The translations under genes were made by a program, and so were the position numbers. A stretch of DNA of 64,000 bases, taken from sequence record OP729297.1; one strand, 5' to 3'. Shown here piece by piece: positions 20,680-62,100 of this stretch (positions within the stretch are counted from its first letter, which is position 1; each line of letters starts with the position of its first letter). A model generated the notes under the pieces. It saw only the letters and a list, made by a program, of their open reading frames with translations, searched no databases and was not told the origin of the DNA.

Positions 20680-20735
20680 ATTATATCATATAAGACTATT
20701 CTGATACAACCGCATTTCGTCCAGGAATATGCTTA
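20680..20735 (-). promoter_or_regulatory. Conserved phage promoter P1
   Basis: Minus strand GCA TATTC CTGGAC, 33 nt, TATAAT preceded by TGA. Confidence 0.8.
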
Positions 20736-20753
20736 GTTGTATTTACAGATTTC

Positions 20754-22403
20754 TCAAAGACTTACAGGCATCTTATCGTCTGGAGACTTGAGATAGGCCT
20801 TAACTTTCGCAGCAGTACCAGCAGCGGCATATTTGCCTGGTTCTTTCAGACCGCCTTTGTACTCAGCAATCTCGGCCTTCAGCTCTTTAACTTTTTGGGC
20901 TAATGCTGCACGTTCGAGTCTTGCCAACTTACGAACCTGACGGTCGAGTATGATCTTGGCGCTCTCAAGTTTAATCTTGAAAATCTTCGCCAGCATTTCA
21001 TCAGGGTCTTTAGCCATAAGAACCTTAGGCAGAGCTTTGAGCAACTTGTCCATGTTATCCACAGCCCACAAATATACCTCATTGAGATACAACTGCCGTT
21101 CTGCTTTGGCCAGCTTGTTTTTGAGCATCGCAGTTTCCAGCTTAACGCGATACGCAACCCATGCTTTGAAGTAGTTCACATACGACAGATACATGAACTT
21201 GTTTGAGGCATCAGCACGGCGAACTGTCACACCGAGCGAGTAGTTGATGGCCGACGTTACTTCACGCTGAATCTTGGTGGCGAGTTCATACAATTGGTCT
21301 TCGCTACCACGACACTTGATCGCAAACGCGGCGCCCCACGGGCCTGCGTCTTTGTTCTTCTTCGAGCTGGCGTTTGATGCAGATACAACACCAGGCCATT
21401 CAGCAATCTTCTCCAGCTTCTTAGTGATGGTGGAGTTGTTTGACATACCGCCGGGCACATACGTTTGAATCGTGATCGTCTTCGCCTTCTCGTCGATCTT
21501 CATCTGCGGTTCGTATGTGACTTTACCTCGCCCAGTAGACATGAGCGCCAGATAGTCTTCGTCTGAGCTTACGTCCAAGCAACCGTACTCGTGGTTAACT
21601 TTGAGCGTGTCTGCCAGTTTCTTCGCGCTGTACTCTTTGCCGTTGAGCATATCGCACACGACTTTCGCAACAGACGTAAAGCTGAACGATGGGTTACCGC
21701 ACTTAACGCCGTATGCTGGTGCAGGCACACTACCGTTGAACAACATGTACGGCAGCAGCGCTGGCAGATACAAAGGTATCTTCATATCGTTCGAGAAGTT
21801 GTCTACCATCGGCGTTACTTCTAGGTAGTCAGGGTCAAGCAAGAAGCTACCTGCGAACTTACTCATTTTCGCTTCGGTGTAACGCATCGCAGCGGCAGGT
21901 GCTACAGGGTCGCCCCAGTTACCTTGACCAGCTACAGCAGGAGGCACTGTGTTTGCAATCGTTACCATTGCACCGTAACAGGCTGCATCGCCGTGCGGGT
22001 GATACTTACCTAACGCATCACCAACGGTACGCGCAGACTTCTTGAATGCTCCGCCTGGACGTAAGCCCAAGTCACACAACGACCAAAGTAACGCACGGTG
22101 TACAGGCTTGAGGCCATCACGGTAGTCAGCGATAGCACGGTCTTCAACAACGTAAGAGCCGTACTGGAAGAGAGCGCGTCGTGTGTAGTCAGCGAGGTTC
22201 TCGTCACGAATGAGAGATTCATCTTGACCCAGCATCGGGTACAATGAAGCGCCTGTGCTGGTTGTTGCTACTTCGCCTTTCTTCTTTTTCTTTTTCTGCA
22301 TGTCATCGACAGCAACAGCTTTCGATTTCAACTTGACCTTTGCAGGCTTCGCTACAGCAGTCGATTTCTTTTCGACTTTTACTTTCTTTGGCTTAACTGC
22401 CAT
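20754..22403 (-). CDS. gyrA: Type II topoisomerase subunit A (GyrA/ParC-like, no C-terminal pinwheel)
   Basis: RAIADYRDGLKPVHR, GKYHPHGD, GQGNWG, AAMRYTEAKM (catalytic Tyr); only 549 aa. Confidence 0.95.
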   Translation of the reverse strand: MAVKPKKVKVEKKSTAVAKPAKVKLKSKAVAVDDMQKKKKKKGEVATTSTGASLYPMLGQDESLIRDENLADYTRRALFQYGSYVVEDRAIADYRDGLKPVHRALLWSLCDLGLRPGGAFKKSARTVGDALGKYHPHGDAACYGAMVTIANTVPPAVAGQGNWGDPVAPAAAMRYTEAKMSKFAGSFLLDPDYLEVTPMVDNFSNDMKIPLYLPALLPYMLFNGSVPAPAYGVKCGNPSFSFTSVAKVVCDMLNGKEYSAKKLADTLKVNHEYGCLDVSSDEDYLALMSTGRGKVTYEPQMKIDEKAKTITIQTYVPGGMSNNSTITKKLEKIAEWPGVVSASNASSKKNKDAGPWGAAFAIKCRGSEDQLYELATKIQREVTSAINYSLGVTVRRADASNKFMYLSYVNYFKAWVAYRVKLETAMLKNKLAKAERQLYLNEVYLWAVDNMDKLLKALPKVLMAKDPDEMLAKIFKIKLESAKIILDRQVRKLARLERAALAQKVKELKAEIAEYKGGLKEPGKYAAAGTAAKVKAYLKSPDDKMPVSL

Positions 22404-22723
22404 TACTGTTCCCCTTTGGCAATCGCGTTAATCTTACTGAGCATTGATTGAGGTATATGCAGTTGCACACGCTCAACAGGCTTGTCGTCAACAATACGAT
22501 GCGCAGACACCGTATGACCAGTGCATCCGTACTTGGCGCAAATCTCTTTGCCGACAAGTTCCGGGTTCAACTCGTTGCCGTCTTTATCTTTAACGGACAC
22601 GGTCTCTGGTGGCACATAACTGGTACGCAGATTCTTGAGTCTGTTTTCGAATCGCGGCTCAATAGCGCCCAGATCGATGAAGCGAACTTCGGTGCCGTTC
22701 GACAAGTTCTCTTTCGTGAACAT
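22403..22723 (-). CDS. Hypothetical protein between topoisomerase subunits
   Basis: 106 aa from MFTKE after GGAGG; stop overlaps gyrA ATG. Confidence 0.7.
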   Translation of the reverse strand: MFTKENLSNGTEVRFIDLGAIEPRFENRLKNLRTSYVPPETVSVKDKDGNELNPELVGKEICAKYGCTGHTVSAHRIVDDKPVERVQLHIPQSMLSKINAIAKGEQ

Positions 22724-22724
22724 G

Positions 22725-24755
22725 CTATTCCTCCAGACCCAACAGACGGCGACGATGGACAGCATCTTCTGCCAGCACACCACGGAAGAAACGTTCTTGC
22801 TCAACGCTAGTGAACGGGTTCACACGAATCAAGCGACGAGTCTTCGGATTGAATGAGATCGCTTCGAGCACGTCAGGTTCAACTTCACCCCAACCTTTTG
22901 CACGAACGATTTCTTTATCTTTTACAGCAGACGGTGCTTTCGCTCGGCATTCTTCAAACGTCATGCCGCCGTAGTGAATGCCTTTGTGCATCACGTTATA
23001 CAGCGGAGCATCTACGATCCACACGCGGCCCTCTTTCATCAGGTCAGGCAGCAGACGATAGATAACGCCGAGGAACAACGTTGCGATGTGGAAGCCGTCT
23101 GGGTCAGCATCCATCAGGAACAGCAGGTTGCCGATACGCAGATTCTTCGTGCTTAACTTCGGCGCTTCTGCTTTCGGGTCTAACGATTTCAGGTCAGCAC
23201 CGACAGACACTAACATGCCCTGCACTTCTTTGTGCTTGAGCACGTCAGCCAGTGAGGCTTTCAGACCGTTGAGCGGCTTACCACCAGCAAGCATAACTTC
23301 CTGATAGTCAGGGTTACGTGCGTGTTTCGCAGTACCACCAGCAGAGTCACCTTCTACAACGATAAGCTCACGCTCATGCGGCTTACACTTGAGCGCAGAG
23401 ATCAGGTCAGCTGGGAGTGAGTTACCTTTCAGCTTCTTCTTCGTGTCAGCCATAGACTTCACGACGGCGCTGAGTTCTTCACGTCCCTTGTTCATCGCTT
23501 CGGCGCGTTTGATGATCGTCGTTGCGACCTTCTTATTCTCTTTGAAGTATTTCACGAAAGCGTCTTTCAGCATTTCGTACACTTCTTTTTCGACACGGCT
23601 CGCCAGCTTGTCTTTAACCTGCGAGGTGTACTGAGCACCGTGCATACGCCAGTCGAACATACCAGTCAGGCCGATAAGCAAGTCTTCCTGTTTGAAGCCC
23701 TGCTTCTTCTTGCTCTTACCTTTCTGCTCTTTCATGAAAGGCTTGATTGCTTCGAACAACGCATCGCGGAAACCAACAACATGCCACCCGCCGTCAATCG
23801 TTGGGCTGGTGTTAACGAAAGACAGGAAGTTGTCTGTGTCTGCATGGTCAGTCCATGTCAGCGCAGCGGTGATGTTGTCGTTCTTGAAGATGAACGGCTT
23901 ACCAACTGAGCCAAGCTCGCGTTCTTCAACCATCGTCTTGACAACGTGCACCAAGTCTTTCTTGTTGAGGAAGGTGAACTCTTTGCGCTTGCCTTTCTTG
24001 ATCAACGTCAGGCGCACTTCAAGGCCTGGGTTGAGCATAGACATGTTACGCAGCCATGAGCCAAGCTGTGCTGGGTCTGGGGCAGCGTGACGATAGTTCT
24101 TCGGCAGCTTCTTACCACGCTGTACGTCAGCAGACACAACAGTCTGGTCGAGGGTCCATGCGACAATCGTACCGTACTTGCTGTGTTTCTTTTCACGCAG
24201 CAGACTCATAACATCTTTGTCTACTGCTTTAACCTGTTTCGGGTCTTTGCCAGACTTGGCGACACCGCACTCCCACATCTGATACGCACAACCGCCTTTG
24301 TACATTGACCACACACGCAGGCGACTTGAGATTGCGTTCAGTGCTGCAACGCCTACGCCGTGAGTACCAGCAGAGGTCTTATATGCTTTATCATCGAACT
24401 TACCACCAGCGTGTGCTCGGCTAAACGCTGCGGTCATGATCGTTTCTTTCGAACCGTCTTTCAGTTTCTTGAAGTCGGTCGGAATACCTTTCGCCATATC
24501 GGCAACAACGTTCAGGTCGTTATCGTAGTCAATGACCACTTCGATAAGTTTGTTTCGACCTGCGATGTATTCATCGTAATCGTTATCGACTGGCTCTTTA
24601 ACCGCACGGTAAGCCATATCGGCACCGCGTTCCCCCATGTACATCCCGGGATTTAGACGAATACCATCAAGGCCTTCGGCAATCATGAATCCTTCTTGTT
24701 CGGACCCATCTCCCGTTTTCTTTTTAACTTTGGCAGCTTTAGGCGCTTTGGCCAT
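22725..24755 (-). CDS. gyrB: Type II topoisomerase subunit B (GyrB/ParE-like)
   Basis: GHKL motifs EPVDN, DMAKGIP, HAGGKF, GTHGVG; Toprim VEGDSAGG and DADPDG; KGWGE. Confidence 0.95.
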   Translation of the reverse strand: MAKAPKAAKVKKKTGDGSEQEGFMIAEGLDGIRLNPGMYMGERGADMAYRAVKEPVDNDYDEYIAGRNKLIEVVIDYDNDLNVVADMAKGIPTDFKKLKDGSKETIMTAAFSRAHAGGKFDDKAYKTSAGTHGVGVAALNAISSRLRVWSMYKGGCAYQMWECGVAKSGKDPKQVKAVDKDVMSLLREKKHSKYGTIVAWTLDQTVVSADVQRGKKLPKNYRHAAPDPAQLGSWLRNMSMLNPGLEVRLTLIKKGKRKEFTFLNKKDLVHVVKTMVEERELGSVGKPFIFKNDNITAALTWTDHADTDNFLSFVNTSPTIDGGWHVVGFRDALFEAIKPFMKEQKGKSKKKQGFKQEDLLIGLTGMFDWRMHGAQYTSQVKDKLASRVEKEVYEMLKDAFVKYFKENKKVATTIIKRAEAMNKGREELSAVVKSMADTKKKLKGNSLPADLISALKCKPHERELIVVEGDSAGGTAKHARNPDYQEVMLAGGKPLNGLKASLADVLKHKEVQGMLVSVGADLKSLDPKAEAPKLSTKNLRIGNLLFLMDADPDGFHIATLFLGVIYRLLPDLMKEGRVWIVDAPLYNVMHKGIHYGGMTFEECRAKAPSAVKDKEIVRAKGWGEVEPDVLEAISFNPKTRRLIRVNPFTSVEQERFFRGVLAEDAVHRRRLLGLEE

Positions 24756-24829
24756 TTTCGTATTCTCCTGAGTGAGTATCGTGTGGACTACTCGATATTA
24801 GCAATTTCAGACACTGCTTGTCTGACGCT

Positions 24830-24883
24830 ATTATATCACATAAGACTATTCTTATATACCCGCAATCTGTCCAGTTATTTGCA
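24830..24883 (-). promoter_or_regulatory. Conserved phage promoter P2 (upstream of gyrB)
   Basis: GCA AATAA CTGGAC, 33 nt, TATAAT preceded by TGA; followed by hairpin TCAGACA-AGCAG-TGTCTGA. Confidence 0.8.
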
Positions 24884-24892
24884 GAGTTTGAA

Positions 24893-26096: not shown

Positions 26097-26123
26097 GGCA
26101 TTACCTCAAAAATTCGTGCAGAT

Positions 26124-26160
26124 AAGACAAAAGGGCAAACGCTCGTCAGCGCTGCCCTTT
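26124..26160 (-). terminator. Rho-independent terminator
   Basis: Minus strand AAAGGGCAGCGCT-GACG-AGCGTTTGCCCTTT then TGTCTT, just after the H1-like gene. Confidence 0.75.
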
Positions 26161-26193
26161 CGATCAAGTGACCGCTAGTGCGCGATTACTTGC

Positions 26194-27732: not shown

Positions 27733-27779
27733 GATATTTATTTCCTGTTTGATTAGAAGCGATGTTGCTTCAATTAAGA

Positions 27780-27847
27780 TTTACAGATTTCGAGAGACAG
27801 GCAGCGAGAACATTTTATCTCGCTGCATACTTAATGTTTACAGATTT
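27780..27847 (-). promoter_or_regulatory. Tandem AAATCTGTAAA motifs (candidate second promoter class) flanking a hairpin
   Basis: Copies at 27780-27790 and 27837-27847 around GCAGCGAGA-TAAAATGT-TCTCGCTGC. Confidence 0.5.
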
Positions 27848-28427: not shown

Positions 28428-28526
28428 TTGTTTAATGCTCCGGGATTTATAAAGTGTGAGCGTATCGCTCGGTTCGAACTTCAATTAGTGTTTACAGTTT
28501 CGATTGCAGGTAACTTTTACAGATTA

Positions 28527-29357
28527 TTAAAAGCTATCACGAATCAGATGCGTACAAATTTTCAGAAGTGTTTCGCAGAACAATTCTTCGTAATCATCGT
28601 CATCTTCGAGATGGTCAATAGCATCGCTCTCAAATGCGATAGGCAACCAGTCGAAGGCCTGACAAATGTTACGTGCGGCGAAGCCCATGTGGGCAGAGTT
28701 ATTCTTCGCCTCCCACACCCAATGTAACATCTTACGTGACTGTTCATACTGGGTGTCTTTGAGGAACAGGTCGATGTTCGCTCGGATGTAATTATTGAGT
28801 TCCCCCAGCAGCGCAGCGCTTGCAGGAGCGTCGGCACCAACAGCAGAACAATACATTGCGACAGAGCGATACAGAGAAGGCTGTTTGATTACCACGTCGG
28901 TGCGGTTCAAATCAGCAAGCGCTCTGGCCACTTTGTTCGTTTCACGGTTTACAGAACCGTGTGCGAGTTGCTGTACGACATTGTGATAGTGGCTAATGCC
29001 AGCACACATTATCATATGCAGAGCAAACGGCAGCGGATTCGCTTGCTTCTGTTTACTCTTTACAGATTCGTTTTCAGCTTGCAGCTTTTTAAGCTCGGCT
29101 GTTTGTTCGTTGCAGAAGCCAACCACTTCTTTAATGCGTTCATCGCGCAGTGCGATTTCAACGGCGTGTTGGCGTACTTTACGTCTGAGTGCGACACGCA
29201 GCACTGTGCTGCGGCTTACTTCATCCTCTAAGACGTTCTCCACATCTTTCTTATCACCAATAGCTTCTTCAAGCTCGTTGGTCAGTTCGCGGATTTTATC
29301 GTCACGGGTACTAATCATCTGTACGATGTTAGCTTCGTGGTCTACTTCTTGTGTCAT
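28527..29357 (-). CDS. Hypothetical coiled-coil protein
   Basis: 276 aa with heptad N-terminal half. Confidence 0.75.
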   Translation of the reverse strand: MTQEVDHEANIVQMISTRDDKIRELTNELEEAIGDKKDVENVLEDEVSRSTVLRVALRRKVRQHAVEIALRDERIKEVVGFCNEQTAELKKLQAENESVKSKQKQANPLPFALHMIMCAGISHYHNVVQQLAHGSVNRETNKVARALADLNRTDVVIKQPSLYRSVAMYCSAVGADAPASAALLGELNNYIRANIDLFLKDTQYEQSRKMLHWVWEAKNNSAHMGFAARNICQAFDWLPIAFESDAIDHLEDDDDYEELFCETLLKICTHLIRDSF

Positions 29358-35879: not shown

Positions 35880-37508
35880 TTATTTCAGCAGCTTGCGCAG
35901 TTGTGCGGCTTTCATGTTCTCAGCTTTACGCACAGTGGTCAGGCCGGCTTCAACAACGCGGTCACGCAGTTCGTCTTCGGACAGGTCTTCCAGATCTTCG
36001 GACGGCAGGTCGTTAAACTCGAAGTCGTCTTCTTCTTCGCCGTCTTCTTCTTCGCCATCTTCTTCATCTTCGAAGTCGTTTTCTTCACCGTCTTCTTCTT
36101 CACCGTCTTCTTCTGAATCGTCAGCTTCACCGCTATCGATCACAGGGCTAAAGTCGGTCAGAGTTTTGATATCGGCTTTGCTATACACCAGCACGTTATC
36201 ATCTTCGTCTGCATCATCAGACAGGTCGATAACCAGCAGACCGCCTTTGCTATCGCAGCCGAGGTAAGCGAAAGTAGTTTCGCCGTCAGTTAACATCAGG
36301 CCTGGGGCCAGAGCTTCTTCATCAACACCGAAGCGTTCAGCCAGCGCAGCGTGATACTTGGCGGTTACTTTCTTGTTGACCAGTTCGAGTTGATCAGCAT
36401 CGACTGCGACGAACTCGTATTCGGCATCTTGCGGTTCGCCGTCTTCTTCTTCGCCATCGTCTTCTTCACCGTCTTCTTCGTCTTCGGAGGATTCTTCCTC
36501 TTCTTCTTCCTCCTCGATTTCATCTTCATCTTCAATTTCATCTTCTTCCTCTTCTTCGCTTTCATCAGCGACGATTTCGAAGTCGGCCAGTTTGTCGGCA
36601 CCGAATGATTTGAAGCCGTCAGTGTCGGCGCTATACATCAGCGCTTTGCCTGCATGTTTCGCAGACTCACCGACGAACACGAACTCAGTACCTTCGCTGG
36701 TCAACACGGTACCAGGCAGCAGGTCGTTCGCGTCTTCAAGGTCGAAGGCCGCTTTGATTGCTTTCGCCAGCACTTTGCCAATCTTCTTGGCAGCGAGCTT
36801 GGCCGCACGTTTCGCAACAGCTTCGTCCAGCTCAGGCGCAGCAGCAACAGTTTTAACAGGCGCAGCGTATTGCAGGTTCAGCGTAATCTGGAGCACGTTA
36901 CCTTCAGGCGCATACTCAGCACCGTAAGTAACGTCCAGTGCGTTAGCGATCGGCGTTTTGTTATCAGCGCACACTTTTGCAACGTCAGAGTTAAGCACGT
37001 AATGGGCCAGACGTTGAGCAACTGCATCGGTCAGCGACTCGTCTACAGCTTCGATCTCAACAGCAGGCTTGGCTTTGCCGCCTTTGATGATAGCGTGAGC
37101 CAAATTCTGGTAATCTTCGGATTGCTCTTCGGAAGATTTACGACGAACTTTCGGCTCTTTGTCTTTCGACGGCTTCGCGTCTTTCTTGCCAGAAGTTTTC
37201 TTTGTACCAGCTTTCTTGCCAGACGCTTTCGGCGCGGCAGCTTCTTTCTTGGCAGTTTTCTTACCAGACGCTTTCGCATCTTTCAGCTTAACATAACCTT
37301 CGCCTGTATCTTCCAGCTGGCTCATGTTCATGCGCTCGATTTCGCGGAAGTGAGAGCCTTCTTTGATGATGCAGCGGGTGGCGATACGCTTGGTCAGGCC
37401 CTTCACTTTATAGCCAGACGCGATTGCATCTTCGATTTTAGATTTGGTGCCGTTCAGCAGGACGATAGTTTTGCCAACCAGGTTAGTGTTAGTTTCGATA
37501 CGTGCCAT
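35880..37508 (-). CDS. Basic/polyacidic protein with C-terminal module copy
   Basis: K/A-rich segment, D/E tracts, ends LEDLSEDELRDRVVEAGLTTVRKAENMKAAQLRKLLK. Confidence 0.8.
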   Translation of the reverse strand: MARIETNTNLVGKTIVLLNGTKSKIEDAIASGYKVKGLTKRIATRCIIKEGSHFREIERMNMSQLEDTGEGYVKLKDAKASGKKTAKKEAAAPKASGKKAGTKKTSGKKDAKPSKDKEPKVRRKSSEEQSEDYQNLAHAIIKGGKAKPAVEIEAVDESLTDAVAQRLAHYVLNSDVAKVCADNKTPIANALDVTYGAEYAPEGNVLQITLNLQYAAPVKTVAAAPELDEAVAKRAAKLAAKKIGKVLAKAIKAAFDLEDANDLLPGTVLTSEGTEFVFVGESAKHAGKALMYSADTDGFKSFGADKLADFEIVADESEEEEEDEIEDEDEIEEEEEEEESSEDEEDGEEDDGEEEDGEPQDAEYEFVAVDADQLELVNKKVTAKYHAALAERFGVDEEALAPGLMLTDGETTFAYLGCDSKGGLLVIDLSDDADEDDNVLVYSKADIKTLTDFSPVIDSGEADDSEEDGEEEDGEENDFEDEEDGEEEDGEEEDDFEFNDLPSEDLEDLSEDELRDRVVEAGLTTVRKAENMKAAQLRKLLK

Positions 37509-37564
37509 GATTAATACTCCTCAGTATATGTTTTTGTGTGTGACGCACTATTGCGTCTGAATCT

Positions 37565-37618
37565 ATTATAGCATAGGTGGCCGTCAGATAACAACCACGA
37601 TTTTGTCCAGTTTTCTGC
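37565..37618 (-). promoter_or_regulatory. Conserved phage promoter P3
   Basis: GCA GAAAA CTGGAC, 34 nt, TATAAT preceded by TGC; followed by hairpin GACGCA-ATAG-TGCGTC. Confidence 0.8.
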
Positions 37619-37670
37619 ATACTTCGCAGATAGCAGGGCAGCTATATTTCACTGCCCCGCTCGTTATTGC

Positions 37671-38480: not shown

Positions 38481-38676
38481 ATCTATTTCCTTTGCGGTTT
38501 AGCATGAGAGCACGGCAGGCGGAAACCGCGTAAAGCCCGACGCGCTCAAAGGGTATCGAACCCTTTTTAAAACAGCCTCACAGGAAGCAGCTTTAAAAAG
38601 GACCGTGTGCCCGGGAAAAGATAAACACACGGTCAAGACGTTATAGGAACATCACAGAGAGAACATGTCTCGCTGT
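38481..38676 (-). ncRNA. Candidate structured 5' leader / small RNA
   Basis: ORF-free ~195 nt after P4 with stems GACCGTGTG/CACACGGTC and CTTTTTAAA/TTTAAAAAG, and T-loop-like AAAGGG-TTCGATA-CCCTTT. Confidence 0.35.
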
Positions 38677-38682
38677 CTCTAT

Positions 38683-38735
38683 ATTGTATCACGGACGCTG
38701 TTTTGAGACAATCCTCATTTTGTCCAGATTTATGC
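38683..38735 (-). promoter_or_regulatory. Conserved phage promoter P4
   Basis: GCA TAAAT CTGGAC, 33 nt, TACAAT preceded by TGA. Confidence 0.8.
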
Positions 38736-38951
38736 TTAGAAGCGACGATCTGCCAGAAGCATTCGAACCAGCGCTTCGCGGCTGTAGTTGCTTGCGTCGT
38801 CATCTTCGTCCACAAGCTCGTTAGCTTCTACAGCGTCGGCCAGCTCGTCGTCTGTCCAGTCGTCGTATTGAGCGATTTGCTCATTATAGCGTTGTTCTTC
38901 GGCGGCAGCTATCTGGCCGTTCACTTCATCTTGTGTAGGACATCGGCTCAT
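38736..38951 (-). CDS. Small acidic protein, module-like
   Basis: 71 aa from MSRCPTQ; YDDWTDDELADAVEANEL...SREALVRMLL. Confidence 0.65.
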   Translation of the reverse strand: MSRCPTQDEVNGQIAAAEEQRYNEQIAQYDDWTDDELADAVEANELVDEDDDASNYSREALVRMLLADRRF

Positions 38952-40863: not shown

Positions 40864-40916
40864 TTCGTTGTCTCCTCAGACATATGTTATAAAAGCGCAG
40901 CACAAGCTACGCTTCT

Positions 40917-40969
40917 ATTGTATCATAGGACGCTCTCAGATACTACCGCTGTTTTGTCCAGTTTTATGC
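40917..40969 (-). promoter_or_regulatory. Conserved phage promoter P5
   Basis: GCA TAAAA CTGGAC, 33 nt, TACAAT preceded by TGA; followed by hairpin AAGCGTAGC-TTGT-GCTGCGCTT. Confidence 0.8.
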
Positions 40970-41269
40970 TTACCAGAGCTTCTTGCGGAAGTCTGTCTTT
41001 GTCCACAGCCACGGTCTGTCTGGGTCTGTTTTGACTTCATGACTCAGAGCCAGAACACCCTCGTCTGTCAGAGCGCGTAATTCACGTTCCTCTATCTCAG
41101 AGTATTCTTCGCGGCTGCGGTAGCGCAGGATATGCGCCTCGAATTTATCGAGTGCTTCCTTGCTTGCCAGATAGACAAACCCATCTTCTTTCGGCCCTAA
41201 GAATGCGCGGCGTTCGTTCATCTTCAGGACGATAGCGACATTCGGTACCAATGTCAGTTTATCAGTCAT
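40970..41269 (-). CDS. Hypothetical protein
   Basis: 99 aa after GAGGTG. Confidence 0.7.
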   Translation of the reverse strand: MTDKLTLVPNVAIVLKMNERRAFLGPKEDGFVYLASKEALDKFEAHILRYRSREEYSEIEERELRALTDEGVLALSHEVKTDPDRPWLWTKTDFRKKLW

Positions 41270-45143: not shown

Positions 45144-45175
45144 TCGAGTTCTCTCTATTATGTGTGTCTATGCGT

Positions 45176-45228
45176 ATTATATCACAGGCACGTGGTTCGT
45201 ATACCGTCTATTTCATCCTATTATTTGC
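45176..45228 (-). promoter_or_regulatory. Conserved phage promoter P6 (variant box)
   Basis: GCA AATAA TAGGAT GAAAT, 33-nt spacer, TATAAT preceded by TGA; box includes the HD gene stop codon. Confidence 0.7.
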
Positions 45229-46189
45229 GTCTTTCGCAGACCACACAACTCTCGCCATTACGCAGATGAACCGAAGTGCCGTCATTGAAATAGACGTTGA
45301 AACCCACACCCATGTCAGCAACACGCTCAATCAAGCGACGAGCTTTCAACGTATCTTCTGGTGTGTCGATAAACAGAACATCGTTCGCTTTGACGCGGCG
45401 AGCACTGGTAACAATAAAATCAATGTTGTCTGTCATCCAGCTTTCAATCTTCGCCTGATGGTTGTGATCGTTTTCTGCATCAAGCAACCAGTCCATAGCG
45501 TCTTTGCCGGTCTGCGTAAACATCTCAACGCTACGCAGGAAGTCAACACGACCAGCAGCCCACTCTTTCTGTGTGAAGGTATAAGGCATATCAGGATTGC
45601 TATTCACTTCTTCACGTAAACCAAACATAACGTGGTCGATAACAAACGGCTGCATGCCGTAGAGAATATCCGCGTCACGAATGCAACGTTCAATCATGTT
45701 TTTCGGCACGCGGTCTTCCGAGTAGGGGAATTGCGTAACACGAATCAGGTCGGCCGCAATATCGCAGTTATCGATCAGCACAGCGTCGGCCAGTTCATGG
45801 TGAGCAGCTTTCTCCAATGCGGCAACAGCTTGCTGGACATTGTACGCATCGTCTTTCTGACCGAGAGTATGATTCATGTCGTGGAACATACAGGCAATAG
45901 CTAATGGGACTGCGCCGTTTCTGTATTGCCAATCGTGAATAGCTTCGCAGTCAAGCAACCAAAGCGCAAGAGCCGTTACGTGCTTCATGTGTACGGTCGA
46001 ATGATAGTGCAGAGCTTCCATTATCTGATCGTCGCCGAACGCAGGACAGTTGTTGCGCTCTACGTATTCCCACACCTTAGTCAGGCCAAGACGTTTGATA
46101 CGCTCGTTGAAGTAGACGTTAAGTGCAACAGAAGAATAGAATGGCAGAAGGGTTTTACCTGCAGGGATTTGTTGGAATTGATTAGTCAT
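45221..46189 (-). CDS. HD-superfamily metal-dependent phosphohydrolase
   Basis: YHSTVH...FHDMNH...IRDADIL...LREE...EW..GRVDFL...FT. Confidence 0.8.
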   Translation of the reverse strand: MTNQFQQIPAGKTLLPFYSSVALNVYFNERIKRLGLTKVWEYVERNNCPAFGDDQIMEALHYHSTVHMKHVTALALWLLDCEAIHDWQYRNGAVPLAIACMFHDMNHTLGQKDDAYNVQQAVAALEKAAHHELADAVLIDNCDIAADLIRVTQFPYSEDRVPKNMIERCIRDADILYGMQPFVIDHVMFGLREEVNSNPDMPYTFTQKEWAAGRVDFLRSVEMFTQTGKDAMDWLLDAENDHNHQAKIESWMTDNIDFIVTSARRVKANDVLFIDTPEDTLKARRLIERVADMGVGFNVYFNDGTSVHLRNGESCVVCERRK

Positions 46190-50107: not shown

Positions 50108-50165
50108 TTCCCGTTATAAACGTATGGTTAAAAGTGACGTTGAGAGCGATATTGCTCTAGCTATG

Positions 50166-50218
50166 ATTATAGCAGAAAAGCGCCTCAGATCGAAGCGCTA
50201 GTTTGACCAGTTATTTGC
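50166..50218 (-). promoter_or_regulatory. Conserved phage promoter P7
   Basis: GCA AATAA CTGGTC, 33 nt, TATAAT preceded by TGC; followed by hairpin AGAGC-AATATC-GCTCT. Confidence 0.8.
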
Positions 50219-51413
50219 TACTTTCGTCCATAAGCACGGCAGCAACTGCGAGTGCTTCACGGGCTGTGGCGATTGCATGACTTACGCCGCACGTGTGGCG
50301 TGATACGAGCGTAATAGCAAAACGACGATCACCGAACTCTTTGTTATCAGTATCAATCGTGTGCCAGATTTGTTGCTCACGGGTAAGGAGCAATTTAGTA
50401 CGCGATGTTTTCTGAACTGGCTTCTTGTAGCGAGAAGGCGCTCGGCCTACATAAGCATCCGGCGCAGGACGCGGTAACGTTACGGCAGGCAGATCGATTT
50501 CGACTTCCATGAGCGATACGTCAGGCTGCCAGATATCTTGTTCTGGTTCTTCGTCGTCGTCAGGGTCACCGAACTTACCGTAAAAATCTTCAAGCAGTTC
50601 TTCGGTGTCGCCTTCGTAATCTTCGCGGCTGCGGTAATCATCGTCCTCACATTCGCAATCTTCATCATCACAGCTACATGAGTGTTTTGGCACAGAGTTA
50701 GGACCAATAACATTCAGGCGCTCACACAGATCTGCGAGTTGATTGAACGACATTCCACGAACCTGATCGTATTCTTCAGGACGATTCGCACGACGCGCCG
50801 CTTTCAATGAAGCGATATATTCATCAGGTAGCACGTTGCAGGAATAGATGTTGCCTGTATCTTGATGCGGATGATAAAGCGTGAAGTGACGCAGCGCACC
50901 TTCGTCTTTACCTGCAACCTGCGTTGCGATCAGGAACTGCGCCAGACGCGTATGGCTCACTACAGAAGTGTCTTTGACCAGAATGTTCTCCAGACCTTCC
51001 TGAGCAACCAGCCAGATAAAAGCGCGGGTCAATAGCAGATTCAGATCGTTGTTGTTCTTTGGCCAATAACCGCGACCAGCAGTACGTGGGTCAGTGCAGT
51101 ACATAGTCAGTGCTATGTTTTCTACGGCGCGCATGAACGTGGCTTTCTTGCCTTTACGCAGCAACGTGTCGAGTGCGTAGATTTCATCGGCAGGTAGCAT
51201 TTGTTGGCCATCGCCAGAGAATTGAATCTTAGACAGCAGACGATAGGTAGTTTCAACATCAGGCTCGGTGCCTTCGTAAGCTAGCGCAGCAGAACCAGCA
51301 AGCACCGTGTTGGCTACAGCACGAAGTGCATCACGCTGTTCAGCGGTACCAGAACGAAAAATGGTTTTAGCGGCGTTTGTTACTTGGTCGATGTTCATCT
51401 CAGCTTCGGTCAT
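50211..51413 (-). CDS. Hypothetical protein with Cys/acidic patch
   Basis: 400 aa; CSCDDEDCECEDDD. Confidence 0.75.
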   Translation of the reverse strand: MTEAEMNIDQVTNAAKTIFRSGTAEQRDALRAVANTVLAGSAALAYEGTEPDVETTYRLLSKIQFSGDGQQMLPADEIYALDTLLRKGKKATFMRAVENIALTMYCTDPRTAGRGYWPKNNNDLNLLLTRAFIWLVAQEGLENILVKDTSVVSHTRLAQFLIATQVAGKDEGALRHFTLYHPHQDTGNIYSCNVLPDEYIASLKAARRANRPEEYDQVRGMSFNQLADLCERLNVIGPNSVPKHSCSCDDEDCECEDDDYRSREDYEGDTEELLEDFYGKFGDPDDDEEPEQDIWQPDVSLMEVEIDLPAVTLPRPAPDAYVGRAPSRYKKPVQKTSRTKLLLTREQQIWHTIDTDNKEFGDRRFAITLVSRHTCGVSHAIATAREALAVAAVLMDESSK

Positions 51414-53245: not shown

Positions 53246-53246
53246 T

Positions 53247-53549: not shown

Positions 53550-53605
53550 TGTCTTATTTCCTCTGTCTAGTTATATGAGAAAAACGAGCGATAGTGCTCA
53601 TAAAC

Positions 53606-53659
53606 AGTGTATCACAGGTCGAATATCGCAAACAAGCCTCATTTTGTCCATTTATTTGC
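53606..53659 (-). promoter_or_regulatory. Conserved phage promoter P8
   Basis: GCA AATAA ATGGAC AAAAT, 34-nt spacer, TACACT preceded by TGA; box lies in the last uvsE codons; followed by hairpin GAGC-ACTATC-GCTC. Confidence 0.7.
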
Positions 53660-54619
53660 AGAGTTGACGCTAAAACACGCCAGTTTGACTCTAGCCCTGT
53701 TTTTAGCTTTTGACTCACACATCAGGTCAAAATCAGTGAAGCTGAGGGCCCAGTCGTTTACATCGTCATTGTGATAGTAGTCAGAGTGTGCGCGTAACTG
53801 CATACGATTAGCGGACAGCTTGTTCTGATCAGGCAGACCACGCGAAGGCACGAACTCAGGCTTCGACACAGAGTAGTGAGCAGTCGGTCGAACGCCACGC
53901 CAAGAGTCAATGACACGCTTAACACGATCATCGGTCGGCTGTATGTACTCGTTAGTCATAACCCAGTGATGATGAATGTCGAGGACGATCGGGCATATGT
54001 CTGCCAGCTCTAAACAGTCTTCGAGGCTGGAAGTGATCTCGTCGTTCTCAACGGTCAACATCTTGCGGCAGTGGTCAGAAAGTTTCTGGTGTGCAGCACG
54101 AAAGCCTTTTGCACCAAGTTTACCACTGAGGTGAATGTTGATCTTGAAGTCTTGAAAGCGTCGGCCATATCCCATGTGGTAGGCACAGTACGCATGGTAC
54201 TCAAGTTCACGAATGGAGTTCTCAACCACGTCAGGACGATCAGATGCAAGTACCGTGAACTGACCTGGGTGAAAAGATAGTCGCACATCAAGCCGACGTG
54301 CCGCTGCACCACAGAGTGCTAACATCTTTTCGGTTAAGGCTGCGACGTCATGGCGCATGTACATGTGGAACACTTTCGGGTGAGTGTACAACGGAAGTAA
54401 CTCACTTGTGATTCGAAACATACGCAGGTCGGTACGCAGACGACCAACGTGCTTTATCATGTCGAGTAACGAAGTCAGGTTGTGTGCGACAACGGCCAAA
54501 AGTTTTTCATGCTGGTCAGGTGCGGATAGCGCCGAGAAATGTTTATAGCTAAGGCTCTTGTTGGTGTATGGTTGTTTGTCGTTTGCGTCAAGCAGCTTAC
54601 AGGCGAATCCGAATCTCAT
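53639..54619 (-). CDS. uvsE: UV-damage endonuclease UvsE/UVDE
   Basis: RFGFAC, MFRITS, LSFHPGQF, VENDE, LDIHHHW, HYS, AHSDY, MCESKAK. Confidence 0.9.
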   Translation of the reverse strand: MRFGFACKLLDANDKQPYTNKSLSYKHFSALSAPDQHEKLLAVVAHNLTSLLDMIKHVGRLRTDLRMFRITSELLPLYTHPKVFHMYMRHDVAALTEKMLALCGAAARRLDVRLSFHPGQFTVLASDRPDVVENSIRELEYHAYCAYHMGYGRRFQDFKINIHLSGKLGAKGFRAAHQKLSDHCRKMLTVENDEITSSLEDCLELADICPIVLDIHHHWVMTNEYIQPTDDRVKRVIDSWRGVRPTAHYSVSKPEFVPSRGLPDQNKLSANRMQLRAHSDYYHNDDVNDWALSFTDFDLMCESKAKNRARVKLACFSVNSANKWTK

Positions 54620-56152: not shown

Positions 56153-56153
56153 C

Positions 56154-57504: not shown

Positions 57505-57818
57505 ACGCGGCGCTCCATAGTAGGCGCATCAATTGCAATTGCAGAGAAGCCATCGTCAGCAAAAACAACAACGCACGGATAGTCCATACGCTGTGCCTTG
57601 GCCGCTACTTCTTCATGCTTGTGTTTATTGAGCACAGCCAGCGAAGGACTGGAGTCACGGTACTCATGCAGGTGGTGAGTAAATGCCTCTGCGAATCCAG
57701 CACGATTCATAACGCAGTAGCTCTTATAGCCAACGCGTGTACATGCCTGACGTTTACGCATAGCATCAGCCACAGTAGGAAATTTGAATCCAATAGCTAC
57801 CCAAAGTTTACGCAGCAT
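57501..57818 (-). CDS. Hypothetical protein
   Basis: 105-aa coupled ORF. Confidence 0.65.
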   Translation of the reverse strand: MLRKLWVAIGFKFPTVADAMRKRQACTRVGYKSYCVMNRAGFAEAFTHHLHEYRDSSPSLAVLNKHKHEEVAAKAQRMDYPCVVVFADDGFSAIAIDAPTMERRV

Positions 57819-58018
57819 TATGTTGGCTCCCCTGAGTCTTCACGATCAGCACAGCAATTCTCACACAGGTCATCAAATTCACCGTACACCTCATCTTCTG
57901 CTAGAGGTGTACGGCAGTCTTCGCAACGTGAGTAAGGTTCGGCGCGTTCTTCGCTACGCTTACCTAAGCGTTCGAGGAACTGTTTGCGTTCTTCTTCGTT
58001 CACCACATCTCTCCCCAC
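57818..58018 (-). CDS. Small zinc-finger protein
   Basis: CEDC...CENCC in 66 aa. Confidence 0.6.
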   Translation of the reverse strand: MGRDVVNEEERKQFLERLGKRSEERAEPYSRCEDCRTPLAEDEVYGEFDDLCENCCADREDSGEPT

Positions 58019-58428
58019 AGTTCTTCTACTTCGCTGCGCACAACACGCACAACACGGAAATGAGTAGCAGACTCTGGCTTGTTGTACTTGAGATTAAGGC
58101 GATCAACCAGACCAGTAACTTCTTCTGGCGTTGCGATACCGCTACGAATAACTACCCAGTCGTTAGCAGTCTTAACGAACGCTTCGAGAGAATACGTCAC
58201 GTTCGGATCAACTACTGGCTGGACGTCAGGGTAGGTGCCTTTCTTCACTTCGATAGTCAGCGTCTGAACAACGTTCACTTCTACCGTGTAGTCGTTCTTA
58301 TGCAAGTCCATCCACTTCTGATATTCCTCTTCGGAGCGATACACATCAGTGAACGTGTTGCTTGGCTGATCTTTCTGCGTAACCTTAACGCGCCACTCAG
58401 TGGCAGACTGCAATACTTTAGTTTCCAT
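58000..58428 (-). CDS. Hypothetical protein
   Basis: 142 aa after GAGGT. Confidence 0.7.
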   Translation of the reverse strand: METKVLQSATEWRVKVTQKDQPSNTFTDVYRSEEEYQKWMDLHKNDYTVEVNVVQTLTIEVKKGTYPDVQPVVDPNVTYSLEAFVKTANDWVVIRSGIATPEEVTGLVDRLNLKYNKPESATHFRVVRVVRSEVEELWGEMW

Positions 58429-58430
58429 AG

Positions 58431-58694
58431 TTACCTCAGCTGGGAATCTTTTGAGCCACGACGATTGTAGCCGACGTTAGCAGTGCCATCGTGCGCTGCC
58501 TGACAGTTAACACAGTAACGCGCATTCGGCATAGCGAGCTTACGCATTACAGGAATCTTTTCACCGCAGTCAGGGTTGACGCAGTAGTCGGAACCTACGC
58601 CTTGAAGTTCTGAACGAGCGCGGTCAATCTCGTTCAGCACGTTTGTTTCGATGGTATCGTTCACGCCATCGTCTTTGACAAAACCTACTGCCAT
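58431..58694 (-). CDS. ybiI: DksA/TraR-family C4 zinc-finger protein (YbiI-like)
   Basis: MAVGFVKDDGVN, CVNPDC..IP..R...P.ARYCVNCQ; C-terminal GYNRRGSKDSQLR matches enterobacterial YbiI as recalled. Confidence 0.9.
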   Translation of the reverse strand: MAVGFVKDDGVNDTIETNVLNEIDRARSELQGVGSDYCVNPDCGEKIPVMRKLAMPNARYCVNCQAAHDGTANVGYNRRGSKDSQLR

Positions 58695-58695
58695 T

Positions 58696-59163
58696 TTATT
58701 TCTTTTCCTCGTAGCGATTAATTGTAGCGCCAAGCCCTGAACGTAGTTTACAGTGATTGGCCGCATCATAGGTTACGAACAAATCAACGCGATTACCATC
58801 TGCGTCTTTCACTTCGAGTCGCATAGGATCGCCATGTCTACGGCAATGCTCTTCGGTGTATGCAATACGCAGTGACTTCAATCGGGCCGCCGACAATTTG
58901 AATTGAGCGCGTAGATAATACATATCGTGACGCTCGCCACGTGACTGACAAAGTTGATCCCACGTCTTAGGCTCAACCAGACGACGCACACGATGTGGGC
59001 TACTGCGGCGCTTCAACGCGATAGCAGCCTGATAGTATTTCAGGTCTTTCAGCGTCTCCATACCTTCAAGGTGGATGCGCTCGCACACATCACCGTGATA
59101 CTCAGGATGATTGCGATCACGGAAATACTTGGTGCGGTGAGTTTCAGTAAACATGCGCGGCAT
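58696..59163 (-). CDS. Hypothetical protein
   Basis: 155-aa coupled ORF. Confidence 0.7.
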   Translation of the reverse strand: MPRMFTETHRTKYFRDRNHPEYHGDVCERIHLEGMETLKDLKYYQAAIALKRRSSPHRVRRLVEPKTWDQLCQSRGERHDMYYLRAQFKLSAARLKSLRIAYTEEHCRRHGDPMRLEVKDADGNRVDLFVTYDAANHCKLRSGLGATINRYEEKK

Positions 59164-59519
59164 CAGTCAATACTCCATGTGTTAGTTTTAGGTGGCTTGT
59201 GACCGAACTTCTTTTCGTACCAGACAGCGTGGCGCCGTTCGATCTTATCGAAGTTCAACGAACCAATAACAGTGCTGTTATCTAGTGGACCCATTGCAGC
59301 AAGCAGATAGCATTCATAGGACCACATACGAATATAGCACACACCACCTACGACACCGAAGATAATGCCAGTCCAGAACCACATGTCTTCGACAGCAGGA
59401 GCGGAGCGACCGTGCATGACCAGGATAGCAATCAACATCGCACCGACAATGGCAAGACGTCTACGCCACACAATAAGCCCGTAATAGAAAGGGCTGTCAT
59501 AGTAATAGTTACGACGCAT
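59163..59519 (-). CDS. Two-TM membrane protein
   Basis: Two hydrophobic helices; start MRRNYYY after GGAG. Confidence 0.65.
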   Translation of the reverse strand: MRRNYYYDSPFYYGLIVWRRRLAIVGAMLIAILVMHGRSAPAVEDMWFWTGIIFGVVGGVCYIRMWSYECYLLAAMGPLDNSTVIGSLNFDKIERRHAVWYEKKFGHKPPKTNTWSID

Positions 59520-59520
59520 G

Positions 59521-60138
59521 TTATTCTCCAAGCTCGGCCAGCGCTTCGGTAAGTTCAAACGCACTACTCGTAATAGTGAGGCCAGCAAACTTCTCAGGGA
59601 ACGGTCGACCCGCAGCAAGACGTTGCAGTTTGCGTACGGTTAACATGCCGTACAAACGATGCGTTTCTGGACCTGTGCATTCACGCACAATGTCAGCCAG
59701 AGCTTTCAGGTCATCTTGTGAAACGACGATGGTGGCCAGAGGCTCCGTGATAACCTCTGGGTGTTCTTCGAGAATATCCATCTCTTCCATGACGTCGAAC
59801 ATCACCATCTCAAGTTCTTTGATGGTGCCTTGCCAGTCTTTCAGCGCCAGATACAGGACGCGGAAGACGTGCGAGCGATCAAGCTCTGCATCAATGCGGT
59901 CAAGCACGGCCTCTTCATCTTCGCCGTCGATAACATCGTCATCCTCGTCTTCGTCAAACTCACCTTCCTGGTCGTACATGTCAAACACATCTTCATCGAG
60001 ATAGCCGATGAAAGAACCACGATTGGTTTGCTCAAGGACGTTAAGACCAAACTCGTCTTCGTCCGTGATAGGAATAGAGAGACCGTAGTTCTTTTCGAAC
60101 TCGATCAGAAAATCGTTTACTTCTTTTTGAGTAGCCAT
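59521..60138 (-). CDS. Acidic hypothetical protein
   Basis: 205 aa with D/E tract. Confidence 0.7.
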   Translation of the reverse strand: MATQKEVNDFLIEFEKNYGLSIPITDEDEFGLNVLEQTNRGSFIGYLDEDVFDMYDQEGEFDEDEDDDVIDGEDEEAVLDRIDAELDRSHVFRVLYLALKDWQGTIKELEMVMFDVMEEMDILEEHPEVITEPLATIVVSQDDLKALADIVRECTGPETHRLYGMLTVRKLQRLAAGRPFPEKFAGLTITSSAFELTEALAELGE

Positions 60139-60153
60139 TTTAGTTTTTCCTTA

Positions 60154-61653
60154 TTAGCACATGCCGCTGCCGAAATTGCAAGACGAACCACGCGAGTAAC
60201 TGCACGGAGAAGAATAGTTGCAGCTATCTGGGTAGCCTTGTGGCTCAGTCTTCTTCGCTTTCTTAACGCGAACAGGTTTGGCTTTCTTACCCTGTTCAAG
60301 TTTAAGCGCAGCACCGTTAGGTGCATCATGTTCGCCTTTTTGCTCGAACTCGAAGTCGAAACGCTTCGTCTTTTTAGTCTTCGCCTTCATTTCTGGCACA
60401 GGCTCTTTGCGTGACCAGTCGAAGTACAAGTTGCCGTCCATGTGGAATACCATCTCGGTATATTCTTCTTCGTCTTCGTTCGGTTCGTATGAAGACGCTT
60501 TCAGGTATGCGAAGCTATTACCCAAGTCAGTGCTGCGGTGCGTGAAGCAGGACGGACATGCGGTTGTAAACGTATCGCCAAGTCCACGCATAGTCTCTTC
60601 GGTCACATCGTCATAGAAGCTACCGTCGAAGATAGAGTTAAACAGCTTGATCAGCGCAGGCTCTTTAACTTTCGGAGGCGTATACTTGATGCTCTTATCA
60701 CGTGGTCGTTTTGCTTCACGCGCAGCCTGTACTGCCAGACCGTACTTACGCAGTTCTTTGTTGAGCTTCTTGTTGTTGTAATCAACACGGAACACAACGT
60801 CAATCCACTGGTTCTCTTTCATGAACTCGTTGGCCTGACGGAACTCCCACTCAATGTTATCAATGTTTTGTTCGTTGATAACGAAGTTGATGTGGAAACT
60901 CAGCTTGCGGCCTAACTGACGGCGGAAGCGAGCAAGGTCTTCGAGAGTCCACGTATAGTTGGCGCCCATGATCTTGTTTGCTTTCTCGCGGTCGAACGAG
61001 TGCATACTGATATTCAGATGCGACAGTTTGCTTTCCAACATCTCGTTGGTGTTCAGGTCGAGGAACGTCAGCAACTGATTAGGTTTCTCAAGGAACTGGC
61101 CGTTCGACGTCAGACCGACTTTATACATATGTGCTTTGGTCTGAATCTGGTCGATCGTTTCGAACAGGTACTTCATACGCAGCGTAGGTTCGCCGCCTGA
61201 GATTGATACGTGGTCAACGCGATGCCCGTGCGTCTTAATCGCAGCAATCAGTTTGTCTTGCCACTCTTTCTGAGGCGCCTTGTTTTCCATCTCCTTCTCA
61301 GGACAGAACGAACAATCGGCGTTGCAGGTCACAGGCAGAATAGCAGTGAAGTTACGCAGCACGTTAGGGATCTCGCGCTCTTTCTTTTTCTTCTTGCCGT
61401 ACTTACCAGCTTCCCACTTGTCGAGCATCTCACCCTGATTGCGCTTAATGAGCGACAAACATTCTTCTGGGTATTGCATGTGATGAACGCCAACACCTTC
61501 GATGTGAAGATCGTACATTTGACAGTCAAGCTCACGACCAACAATGATAGCACGTTTACCGTGATGCAATTGGGAATAATCAACGGTATCGACTTTTTCA
61601 ATATTAACCAGGTCGGTCAGACGGAAAGCGTGTTTAATCTTTTTCATATACAT
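60154..61653 (-). CDS. Radical SAM protein with Cys-rich C-terminal tail
   Basis: CNADCSFC (CxxxCxxC), SISGGEPT, LTSNG, NISMHS; tail SCNYSSPCSYSRGSSCNFGSGMC. Confidence 0.85.
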   Translation of the reverse strand: MYMKKIKHAFRLTDLVNIEKVDTVDYSQLHHGKRAIIVGRELDCQMYDLHIEGVGVHHMQYPEECLSLIKRNQGEMLDKWEAGKYGKKKKKEREIPNVLRNFTAILPVTCNADCSFCPEKEMENKAPQKEWQDKLIAAIKTHGHRVDHVSISGGEPTLRMKYLFETIDQIQTKAHMYKVGLTSNGQFLEKPNQLLTFLDLNTNEMLESKLSHLNISMHSFDREKANKIMGANYTWTLEDLARFRRQLGRKLSFHINFVINEQNIDNIEWEFRQANEFMKENQWIDVVFRVDYNNKKLNKELRKYGLAVQAAREAKRPRDKSIKYTPPKVKEPALIKLFNSIFDGSFYDDVTEETMRGLGDTFTTACPSCFTHRSTDLGNSFAYLKASSYEPNEDEEEYTEMVFHMDGNLYFDWSRKEPVPEMKAKTKKTKRFDFEFEQKGEHDAPNGAALKLEQGKKAKPVRVKKAKKTEPQGYPDSCNYSSPCSYSRGSSCNFGSGMC

Positions 61654-61674
61654 GTTCCTCAGATAAAATTCAGA

Positions 61675-62004
61675 TTAGTTGGAAGCAGTTTCAACGTAGG
61701 CAATAAATTCTGCGGACGGCTTTACGTTGTGGTGTTCGATCATGTGCTGGTAAGAATAAGACCAGAGCCAGTTGTCTTTGGTATATTCACCAAGCATCAT
61801 CATCTCACCGCAGTATGGACAGCAGGACATACCACGAATGCGTTCCAGCCTAGAACTTTCCTGAACTCTACGTAACAGAGGAAGGAAGGAATCACGATCA
61901 GCAAACGGCGTAGTCGATTCAGGCGGAATTTGCTCGGCACTGAAAAGAGTAAAAACGCGACCTTCGATTGTAGGTTGAGCAGCAGTTTTCTTTTTCATAT
62001 ACAT
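61675..62004 (-). CDS. Hypothetical protein with Cys/His motif
   Basis: CCPYC...WLWSYSYQHMIEHHNVKPSAEF; start MYMKK after GAGGA. Confidence 0.7.
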   Translation of the reverse strand: MYMKKKTAAQPTIEGRVFTLFSAEQIPPESTTPFADRDSFLPLLRRVQESSRLERIRGMSCCPYCGEMMMLGEYTKDNWLWSYSYQHMIEHHNVKPSAEFIAYVETASN

Positions 62005-62047
62005 GTCCTCATGTAAGTAGCTAAACGAGTGTCTAGCGTTCATCTCT

Positions 62048-62100
62048 ATTATATCACGAACGATATCTGCTTGTAAGACCTATTTCGTCCAGAATTGTGC
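62048..62100 (-). promoter_or_regulatory. Conserved phage promoter P9
   Basis: GCA CAATT CTGGAC GAAAT, 33-nt spacer, TATAAT preceded by TGA; inside the 3' end of the upstream gene; followed by hairpin GCTAGAC-ACTC-GTTTAGC. Confidence 0.8.

Follow-up and report, generated by a model that had tools for sequence, protein, structure and literature searches.

The closest described counterparts of the promoter treated here are upstream promoter (UP) elements, T4 early promoters, class I phage activator promoters and T4 middle promoters. UP elements of the rrnB P1 type carry subsites near -42 and -52 for the C-terminal domain of the alpha subunit in RNA polymerase (alpha-CTD); their consensus, which Estrem et al. 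are said to have defined in 1998, reportedly reads nnAAAWWTWTTTTnnAAAAnnn and is A/T only. T4 early promoters have an extended consensus that includes upstream A-rich blocks, likewise near -42 and -52. At class I promoters (P2 Ogr and P4 Delta with sites near -55, Mu Mor and C at -33 to -56, phi29 p4), a phage protein bound upstream of the -35 element acts via polymerase alpha, and at T4 middle promoters the MotA box, centred at -30, replaces the -35 element. Here we analyse a 64,000-nucleotide window, identical letter for letter to bases 124001-188000 of the Erwinia phage vB_Ea_2910A (OP729297.1), a jumbo phage of the genus Alexandravirus with a genome of 262,854 bp. In this window an extended -10 promoter recurs with a conserved sequence box at the UP position. 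We regard it as a real, clade-wide and apparently undescribed variant of a known design.

How jumbo phages without an RNA polymerase seize the host enzyme in the first minutes of infection is largely unstudied. According to a 2026 review, such phages rely on the host polymerase with sigma factors of their own (PMC13282480), and the present clade was described in work on the PaBG group with only a sigma-70-like gene (PMC7412058). Neither the box sequence nor the promoters of Alexandra, AD1 and Y3 are described in the literature we searched, which did not cover the Y3 genome paper.

Results

The promoter set

A sequence-only reading of the window had listed nine minus-strand copies of a box, GCA-N5-CTGGAC-RAAAT, followed by an extended -10 element, and all nine are present where it placed them. 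GCA and TGn occur in every one of these copies, the hexamer stands 33 nt from the -10 element in seven and 34 nt in two (37565 and 53606), equal to 44 or 45 nt from GCA to TG, and the -35 hexamers are as weak as it had described them. The family itself is larger than nine. All genome-wide tests were run on the whole OP729297.1 record (262,854 bp), in which a position-weight scan found 12 members. Their boxes score 18-34 bits, and every one is on the minus strand, at 144.7 to 196.8 kb of the genome (within 52 kb); the best non-member scored 13 bits and is without a -10 element. Exact matches to GCA-N5-CTGGAC number six against 0.49 expected, and 0/100 shuffles reach six. When the scan was extended to relatives, as the sequence-only reading had proposed, the 12 copies of 2910A became part of a set of 93 boxed promoters from nine phage genomes in five genera. 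The unique copies from 2910A, AD1, SNUABM_1, SNUABM_3, Alexandra and SNUABM_7 (Snuvirus) make up a 64-copy alignment; the other box-bearing genera compared are those of Y3 (Sasquatchvirus), Yoloswag and JA11 (Salmondvirus).

The extended -10 element TGnTAYAMT is found in 9/9 window copies and 11/12 genome copies. The twelfth copy (genome 196002) has CGTATTAT at the usual offset, meaning that CG replaces TG before TATTAT. Genome-wide there are 29 matches to TGNTAYAMT, 11 with the box and 18 others in ordinary coding sequence. A search of the intergenic DNA for classical -35/-10 pairs yielded only two weak box-less candidates, and a generic -35/-10 promoter scan returned sites no more numerous than in shuffled sequence and picked up only 2-3 members of the family. 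Since the generic scanner performs at the level of shuffled sequence, it is the box together with the extended -10 element, and not the -35/-10 pair alone, that defines this promoter class. Judged by these motifs, and the two weak box-less candidates aside, the boxed class would be essentially the sole host-type (sigma-70) promoter set in 263 kb, and the nine repeats of the window, which are real, belong to 12 host-type start signals from which the phage probably launches infection.

Promoter architecture

The layout is constant in all 93 copies: AAcTct-GCA, an A/T run, a 6-bp G/C core and RAAAT (together -65 to -41) are followed by five free bases, a near-invariant T-35, a spacer of 16-18 bp and TGnTAYAMT. 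The sequence-only reading had placed the box at about -59 to -41; it is found there, GCA occupying -59 to -57 and the core hexamer -51 to -46, with A-tracts at -57 to -52 and -45 to -41, and conservation reaches further upstream than that reading had it, to -65 (AAcT), and additionally includes the T at -35. Conserved positions in the 64-copy alignment are A-65, A-64, T-62, G-59, C-58, A-57, A-55, W-54, A-53, T-50, G-49, G-48, C-46, R-45, A-44, A-43, A-42 and T-41, with G-59, C-58, A-57, A-55, G-49, G-48 and A-43 invariant or nearly so, while bases -40 to -36 and the spacer are unconstrained. The two halves of the box form a direct repeat, and their conserved G/C patches lie one helical turn apart.

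T-35, which is position +24 from the box G, is present in 63/64 copies, and the gap between box and T-35 is invariably 5 bp; the -35 hexamers agree with TTGACA at only 1-4 of 6 positions. The one-base variation in length sits between the -35 T and the -10 element and not between the box and the -35 element. Of the 93 copies, 68 have a spacer of 17 bp here, 18 have one of 18 bp and 7 have one of 16 bp, which is the sigma-70 distribution; in other words, a -35 element lies 17 +/- 1 bp upstream of the -10 element in 93/93 copies. The register of the box, -65 to -41 and fixed relative to the -35 element, is that of an UP element. Because the box is locked to the -35 element, one would expect an element that acts with sigma region 4 and the alpha subunits rather than a freely placed operator. 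Such a fixed placement is also what an activating upstream element would show.

Two other promoter types were compared and rejected. In a T4 MotA-type middle promoter the box would be centred near -30, not near -50 as here, where the -35 T is moreover retained. A sigma-54 promoter (GG/GC 10 bp apart, -24/-12, no TATAAT at -10) misfits in spacing and orientation on both strands, and a canonical -10 element is present.

The box core follows the phage genus

The box agrees with the UP consensus at 7-10 of 15 positions (mean 8.75), compared with 4.57 +/- 1.65 for random windows, only 1.1% of which reach 9. These matches all fall in the A-tracts; the T-tract core of the consensus (-51 to -47) is replaced by the G/C core TGGAC. 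The A-tracts would suit alpha-CTD docking at the two UP subsites. Minor-groove reading by the alpha-CTD would not predict the invariant G/C pairs.

In distant relatives the frame is kept (GCA, A/T run, hexamer, RAAAY, five bases, T) and the core is altered. The core reads TGGAC in 7/12, TGGTC in 3/12 and AGG[CA]T in 2/12 copies of 2910A, AGGC[TA] in 7/11 copies of Y3, GGT[CT] in 10/11 of Yoloswag and TGTC[CT] in 8/8 of JA11, whose -10 elements are weaker; the typical cores are thus CTGGAC for Alexandravirus, TAGGCT for Y3, TGGTC for Yoloswag and TGTCC for JA11. Promoters that are orthologous by their transcribed leaders have CTGGAC or ATGGAC in Alexandravirus and TAGGCT or CAGGCT in Y3. Hosts are shared across these differences: AD1 and JA11 both grow on Dickeya solani MK10, and Alexandravirus, Y3 and Yoloswag on E. 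amylovora. The core therefore co-varies with the phage genus, independent of the host. Since it changes in concert, tracks the genus and ignores the host, a phage-specified reader is favoured over the alpha-CTD or a host factor alone, and a phage-encoded protein may read the box core. The sequence-only reading had left the choice between a phage activator site and an alpha-CTD contact; the comparative data lean towards the former, with the A-tracts still fitting a contribution of the latter.

Outside the phages, a scan of one genome per species over 185,579 prokaryotic species gave no box with extended -10 element in Enterobacterales, including Erwinia and Dickeya. The 11 matches obtained comprise four contigs of one metagenome-assembled genome named 'Raoultibacter' and seven singletons in Firmicutes or the Candidate Phyla Radiation. 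The four contigs (GenBank JAVWLC01, labelled Raoultibacter sp.) are Alexandravirus-like, with 52-78% tblastx identity and boxed promoters, and represent a binning contaminant. Matches in IMG/VR are mainly the clade isolates plus a few multi-hit metagenomic contigs of 210-268 kb, besides smaller single-hit contigs.

Polymerase and timing

In up to eight clade genomes, the Pfam families of the RNA polymerase beta and beta-prime subunits had no match, and the controls responded; a search for the T7-type RNA polymerase family also gave nothing, but so did its controls, and it is uninformative. Because no RNA polymerase gene was detected, the boxed promoters are most likely early promoters read by the host polymerase. 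The sequence-only reading had spoken of an early or middle regulon. A single sigma-70 promoter class is borne out, and 'early' is the better label than 'middle', given only two weak box-less candidates elsewhere.

Coordinates, downstream genes and further motifs

The positions of the promoters and of associated features are compiled in Table 1.

Table 1. Boxed promoters of the vB_Ea_2910A window and associated features. Positions refer to the window unless marked as genome; promoters extend from -65 to the predicted +1.
Feature	Position	Strand	Details
P1 boxed promoter	20673..20738	-	box G 20732; TGATATAAT ends 20680; upstream of gene 19132-20406
P2 boxed promoter	24823..24888	-	box G 24882; upstream of GyrB-like gene 22725-24755 and topoisomerase IV A-like gene 20754-22403
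P3 boxed promoter, 18-bp spacer	37558..37624	-	box G 37618; upstream of gene 35880-37508 and an operon including a 1003-aa gene
P4 boxed promoter	38676..38741	-	box G 38735, abuts TAA stop of gene 38736-38951; -35 TTGTCT, -10 TACAAT
P5 boxed promoter	40910..40975	-	box G 40969, abuts stop of gene 40970-41269
P6 boxed promoter, core TAGGAT	45169..45234	-	box G 45228, within 3' end of gene 45221-46189
P7 boxed promoter, core CTGGTC	50159..50224	-	box G 50218; terminator-like hairpin 50199-50179 over -35 and spacer
P8 boxed promoter, 18-bp spacer, core ATGGAC	53599..53665	-	box G 53659, within 3' end of UvdE gene 53639-54619
P9 boxed promoter	62041..62106	-	box G 62100; entire promoter within 3' end of gene 62054-62452
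Three further boxed promoters past the window end	genome 191981, 196002, 196816	-	weight-matrix scan
Second motif, CTGTAAATA	20742-20751, 27780-27789, 27837-27846, 28516-28525, 29059-29068, 8378-8387	-	
Third motif, cg-CTAATTT	10826-10832	-	
P1 leader	20407-20673	-	267 nt
5'-terminal hairpins (examples)	24800-24822, 37535-37556		
81-aa ribbon-helix-helix-like gene	genome 193208-193453	-	
345-aa gene with weak sigma-70 region 2 similarity	genome 206034-207071	-	

All genes of the window are on the minus strand. The boxes had been described as persisting within coding 3' ends, and this holds for the UvdE gene (Pfam UvdE, E=2e-46) and for three genes whose ends lie at 45221, 50211 and 62054. For the first of these three, gene 45221-46189, the label 'HD' that had been attached to it found no confirmation, as Pfam returned no HD domain at E <= 0.01 and only a sub-threshold PhiKZ_gp91 match. 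The genes lying downstream of the boxed promoters encode, among others, topoisomerase II subunits, UvdE, dUTPase, a radical-SAM enzyme and a lytic transglycosylase, along with numerous small proteins that belong to no family. A Pfam run on 20 regulon and flanking proteins left most of them without a family, with matches to UvdE, radical SAM, GyrB-like, topoisomerase IV A-like and SLT lytic transglycosylase proteins.

Two further promoter-like motifs, both over-represented, serve the remaining genome. The first, aaT-CTGTAAATA, has 27 genome copies against 0-6 for each of the three other CTGNAAATA variants, is strand-specific, stands 30-50 nt before start codons and precedes ligase, Dam methylase and sigma-like genes; it probably constitutes the middle or late promoter class and would be read with the help of a phage factor. 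CTGTAAATA is one base off the T4 late promoter TATAAATA. The other, cg-CTAATTT, has about 20 direction-specific copies 30-55 nt before start codons, mostly in plus-strand blocks at 2-77 kb and 219-249 kb of the genome, which are taken to be structural genes, and probably marks another temporal promoter class. Together with the boxed class, the two motifs would make up a cascade of three tiers, of which the boxed class would be the one readable by the unmodified host holoenzyme.

Several structures accompany the promoters. The terminator-like hairpin of P7 has a T-run, lies between the box and the -10 element and is conserved in orthologues, and the copy at genome 196002 carries a similar hairpin where the -35 element would be; by their sequence, both copies are putative overlapping terminator-promoter units. 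The P1 leader, without an open reading frame on the minus strand, starts with a very stable hairpin (z = -4.8) and may act as a regulatory leader or represent a small RNA; Rfam gave no match over the whole window, including this leader. Predicted transcripts begin with a small hairpin within the first about 25 nt in 10/11 copies of 2910A. Over 63 copies, in which orthologues are not independent, these 5' stem-loops have a median z of -1.56 versus 0.13 in random windows (Mann-Whitney p = 4e-8). Stem-loops at the 5' end have a known role in mRNA stability, which these hairpins may fit.

Discussion

We favour the reading, at about even odds (a probability of roughly 0.5), that the boxed promoters are the early promoters of a jumbo phage without RNA polymerase and that they would be used by the host sigma-70 holoenzyme together with an upstream module whose G/C bases a protein of the phage lineage would read. 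The promoter anatomy with its statistics and conservation and the lineage-specific core are observations; that sigma-70 is used, that the promoters act early, that alpha-CTDs dock and that the reader is phage-encoded is what we infer. The host holoenzyme would recognise the extended -10 element TGnTAYAMT and a minimal -35 element (T, often TTG) 17 +/- 1 bp upstream, and the 25-bp element from -65 to -41 would be an activating or selectivity module locked to the latter. In this module, the C-terminal domains of the alpha subunits would dock on two phased A-tracts, while the invariant G/C positions (GCA and the core hexamer) would be read base-specifically by the phage-lineage protein. Such a reader would be delivered with the DNA or made very early, and would help, or later modulate, the recruitment of the host polymerase to phage DNA. 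A bolder form of the idea, which we think rather unlikely, has a virion-packaged, co-injected protein bind the G/C core and, with alpha-CTDs on the A-tracts, draw the host polymerase to phage DNA, its specificity co-evolving with the box in each genus. If so, the protein would play in bacteria the part that VP16, the immediate-early activator, plays for herpesviruses.

The search for a reader protein gave one weak candidate. Family searches over 6-8 clade genomes returned no protein of the OmpR-type winged-helix, HU/IHF or Arc families. An Xre-type helix-turn-helix protein (Pfam HTH_3, E=6e-13; G001:212513-212665, AD1 210549-210701) is confined to the 2910A/SNUABM_33/AD1 clade, with no match in the four other genomes searched (SNUABM_1, SNUABM_3, Alexandra and SNUABM_7); it was rejected as box reader because of this restriction to the closest clade. 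The weak candidate is the 81-aa ribbon-helix-helix-like protein. Alexandravirus, Snuvirus and Sasquatchvirus (Y3) have all kept it, its N-terminal SLGASLGARFAV motif is strongly conserved, and it is encoded in the early arm by the second gene behind a terminator and the CTGTAAATA motif. Its AlphaFold2 monomer is all-helical with a low predicted local distance difference test (pLDDT) score of 64, which is uninformative for an obligate dimer, and a sequence comparison with solved structures gave no match.

A number of points weigh against a phage-encoded reader of early promoters. The Pfam match of the 81-aa protein to RHH_3 (E=0.0019) is below the cut-off, and no orthologue was found in the box-bearing Yoloswag or JA11. 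CTGGAC, CTGGTC and TAGGCT coexist within one genome, so that specificity is loose and tolerance broad, and descent with weak selection could mimic a lineage-specific core preference. With their near-consensus extended -10 element, the boxed promoters should fire without a helper. As to the polymerase and the timing, an RNA polymerase of very divergent sequence could escape the Pfam searches, and the public RNA-labelled runs searched contained only low-depth metagenome contigs of relatives, without usable 5' ends.

Alternatively, the box could be a specialised UP element read by the host alpha-CTDs alone, the G/C bases serving to shape or phase two A-tract docking sites. We judge this somewhat unlikely. 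The box lies at -59 to -41 in a fixed register with the -35 element, A-tracts stand at both UP subsites and carry a significant match to the UP consensus, the direct-repeat halves suit two identical alpha-CTDs, and promoters that must function at time zero would require no unknown factor. However, minor-groove reading of A/T runs leaves the 100% invariant G-59, C-58, G-49 and G-48 unexplained, genera with a common host carry different cores, which have changed in concert at orthologous promoters, and the design is in no host genome scanned. The last two observations also count against a host transcription factor or nucleoid protein whose regulon signal the phage would borrow: the core tracks the phage genus and not the host, and no Erwinia, Dickeya or other Enterobacterales genome scanned has the box with the extended -10 element. 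Such a factor would be present at time zero, and direct repeats one helical turn apart recall response-regulator sites, but the box has no known match to the Fis, IHF, CRP, PhoB or sigma-54 consensus sequences, and we consider this origin highly improbable.

The box could also be the operator of a phage repressor that closes the early promoters at the early-to-middle switch. G/C patches one helical turn apart in direct repeat suit tandem ribbon-helix-helix dimers, and the 81-aa protein would be the candidate, its gene being kept in three genera and placed in the early arm behind a terminator and a second-class promoter motif. The shortcomings of that protein named above apply here as well, and the fixed 5-bp distance to the -35 element would be needless for a repressor, which makes this account improbable in our view. 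Least credible, with only a few chances in a hundred, is a phage sigma-like factor for which the box would be a displaced -35 element. The 345-aa protein, conserved in five relatives of the clade, does show weak similarity to sigma-70 region 2 (E about 0.002, below the cut-off). Yet the -10 element has the host consensus, TGn included, the core hexamer stands 33-34 bp away and out of any sigma's reach, a T or TTG stands at the proper 17-bp distance, and the gene of this protein is itself preceded by the other motif class, CTGTAAATA.

Whatever reads it, the boxed class most likely marks the early regulon, and the box itself would act in the recruitment or tuning discussed here. The clade offers a clean handle on the seizure of the host polymerase, with about a dozen nearly exclusive early promoters that share one upstream element. 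Because the core differs between related phages on the same host, the question of the reader is directly testable. Should a phage protein prove to be the reader, it would represent a new type of early-gene activator; should the alpha-CTD do so, the box would stand out as an UP element of unusual sequence specificity. In addition, the boxed promoters are compact, strong-looking parts for Erwinia and Dickeya genetics.

With respect to the known systems, the box resembles the UP element in its position at -59 to -41, its fixed distance to the -35 element, its two A-rich subsites and its agreement with 7-10 of 15 consensus positions. It differs in the invariant G/C hexamer that stands in place of the T-tract core, in the invariant GCA at -59 to -57, in the genus-specific core and in the extension to -65. 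T4 early promoters share the character of a phage-specific early class for the unmodified host RNA polymerase as well as the upstream A-rich blocks. An invariant G/C box is not known from them. The injected T4 ADP-ribosyltransferase Alt, which acts on alpha and boosts these promoters, sets a precedent for a protein that arrives with the virion and tunes the alpha-dependent use of promoters. Class I phage activators have in common with the present promoters an upstream site, dedicated promoter sets and a poor -35 element, but they serve middle or late promoters through dyad-symmetric sites and a known activator gene, whereas here the earliest set carries a direct-repeat box. T4 MotA promoters likewise have a sigma-70 -10 element, often with TGn, and a phage-specific box that stands in for a good -35 element; in contrast to the MotA box, the one described here has its centre near -50 and leaves a T or TTG as -35 element at 17 bp.

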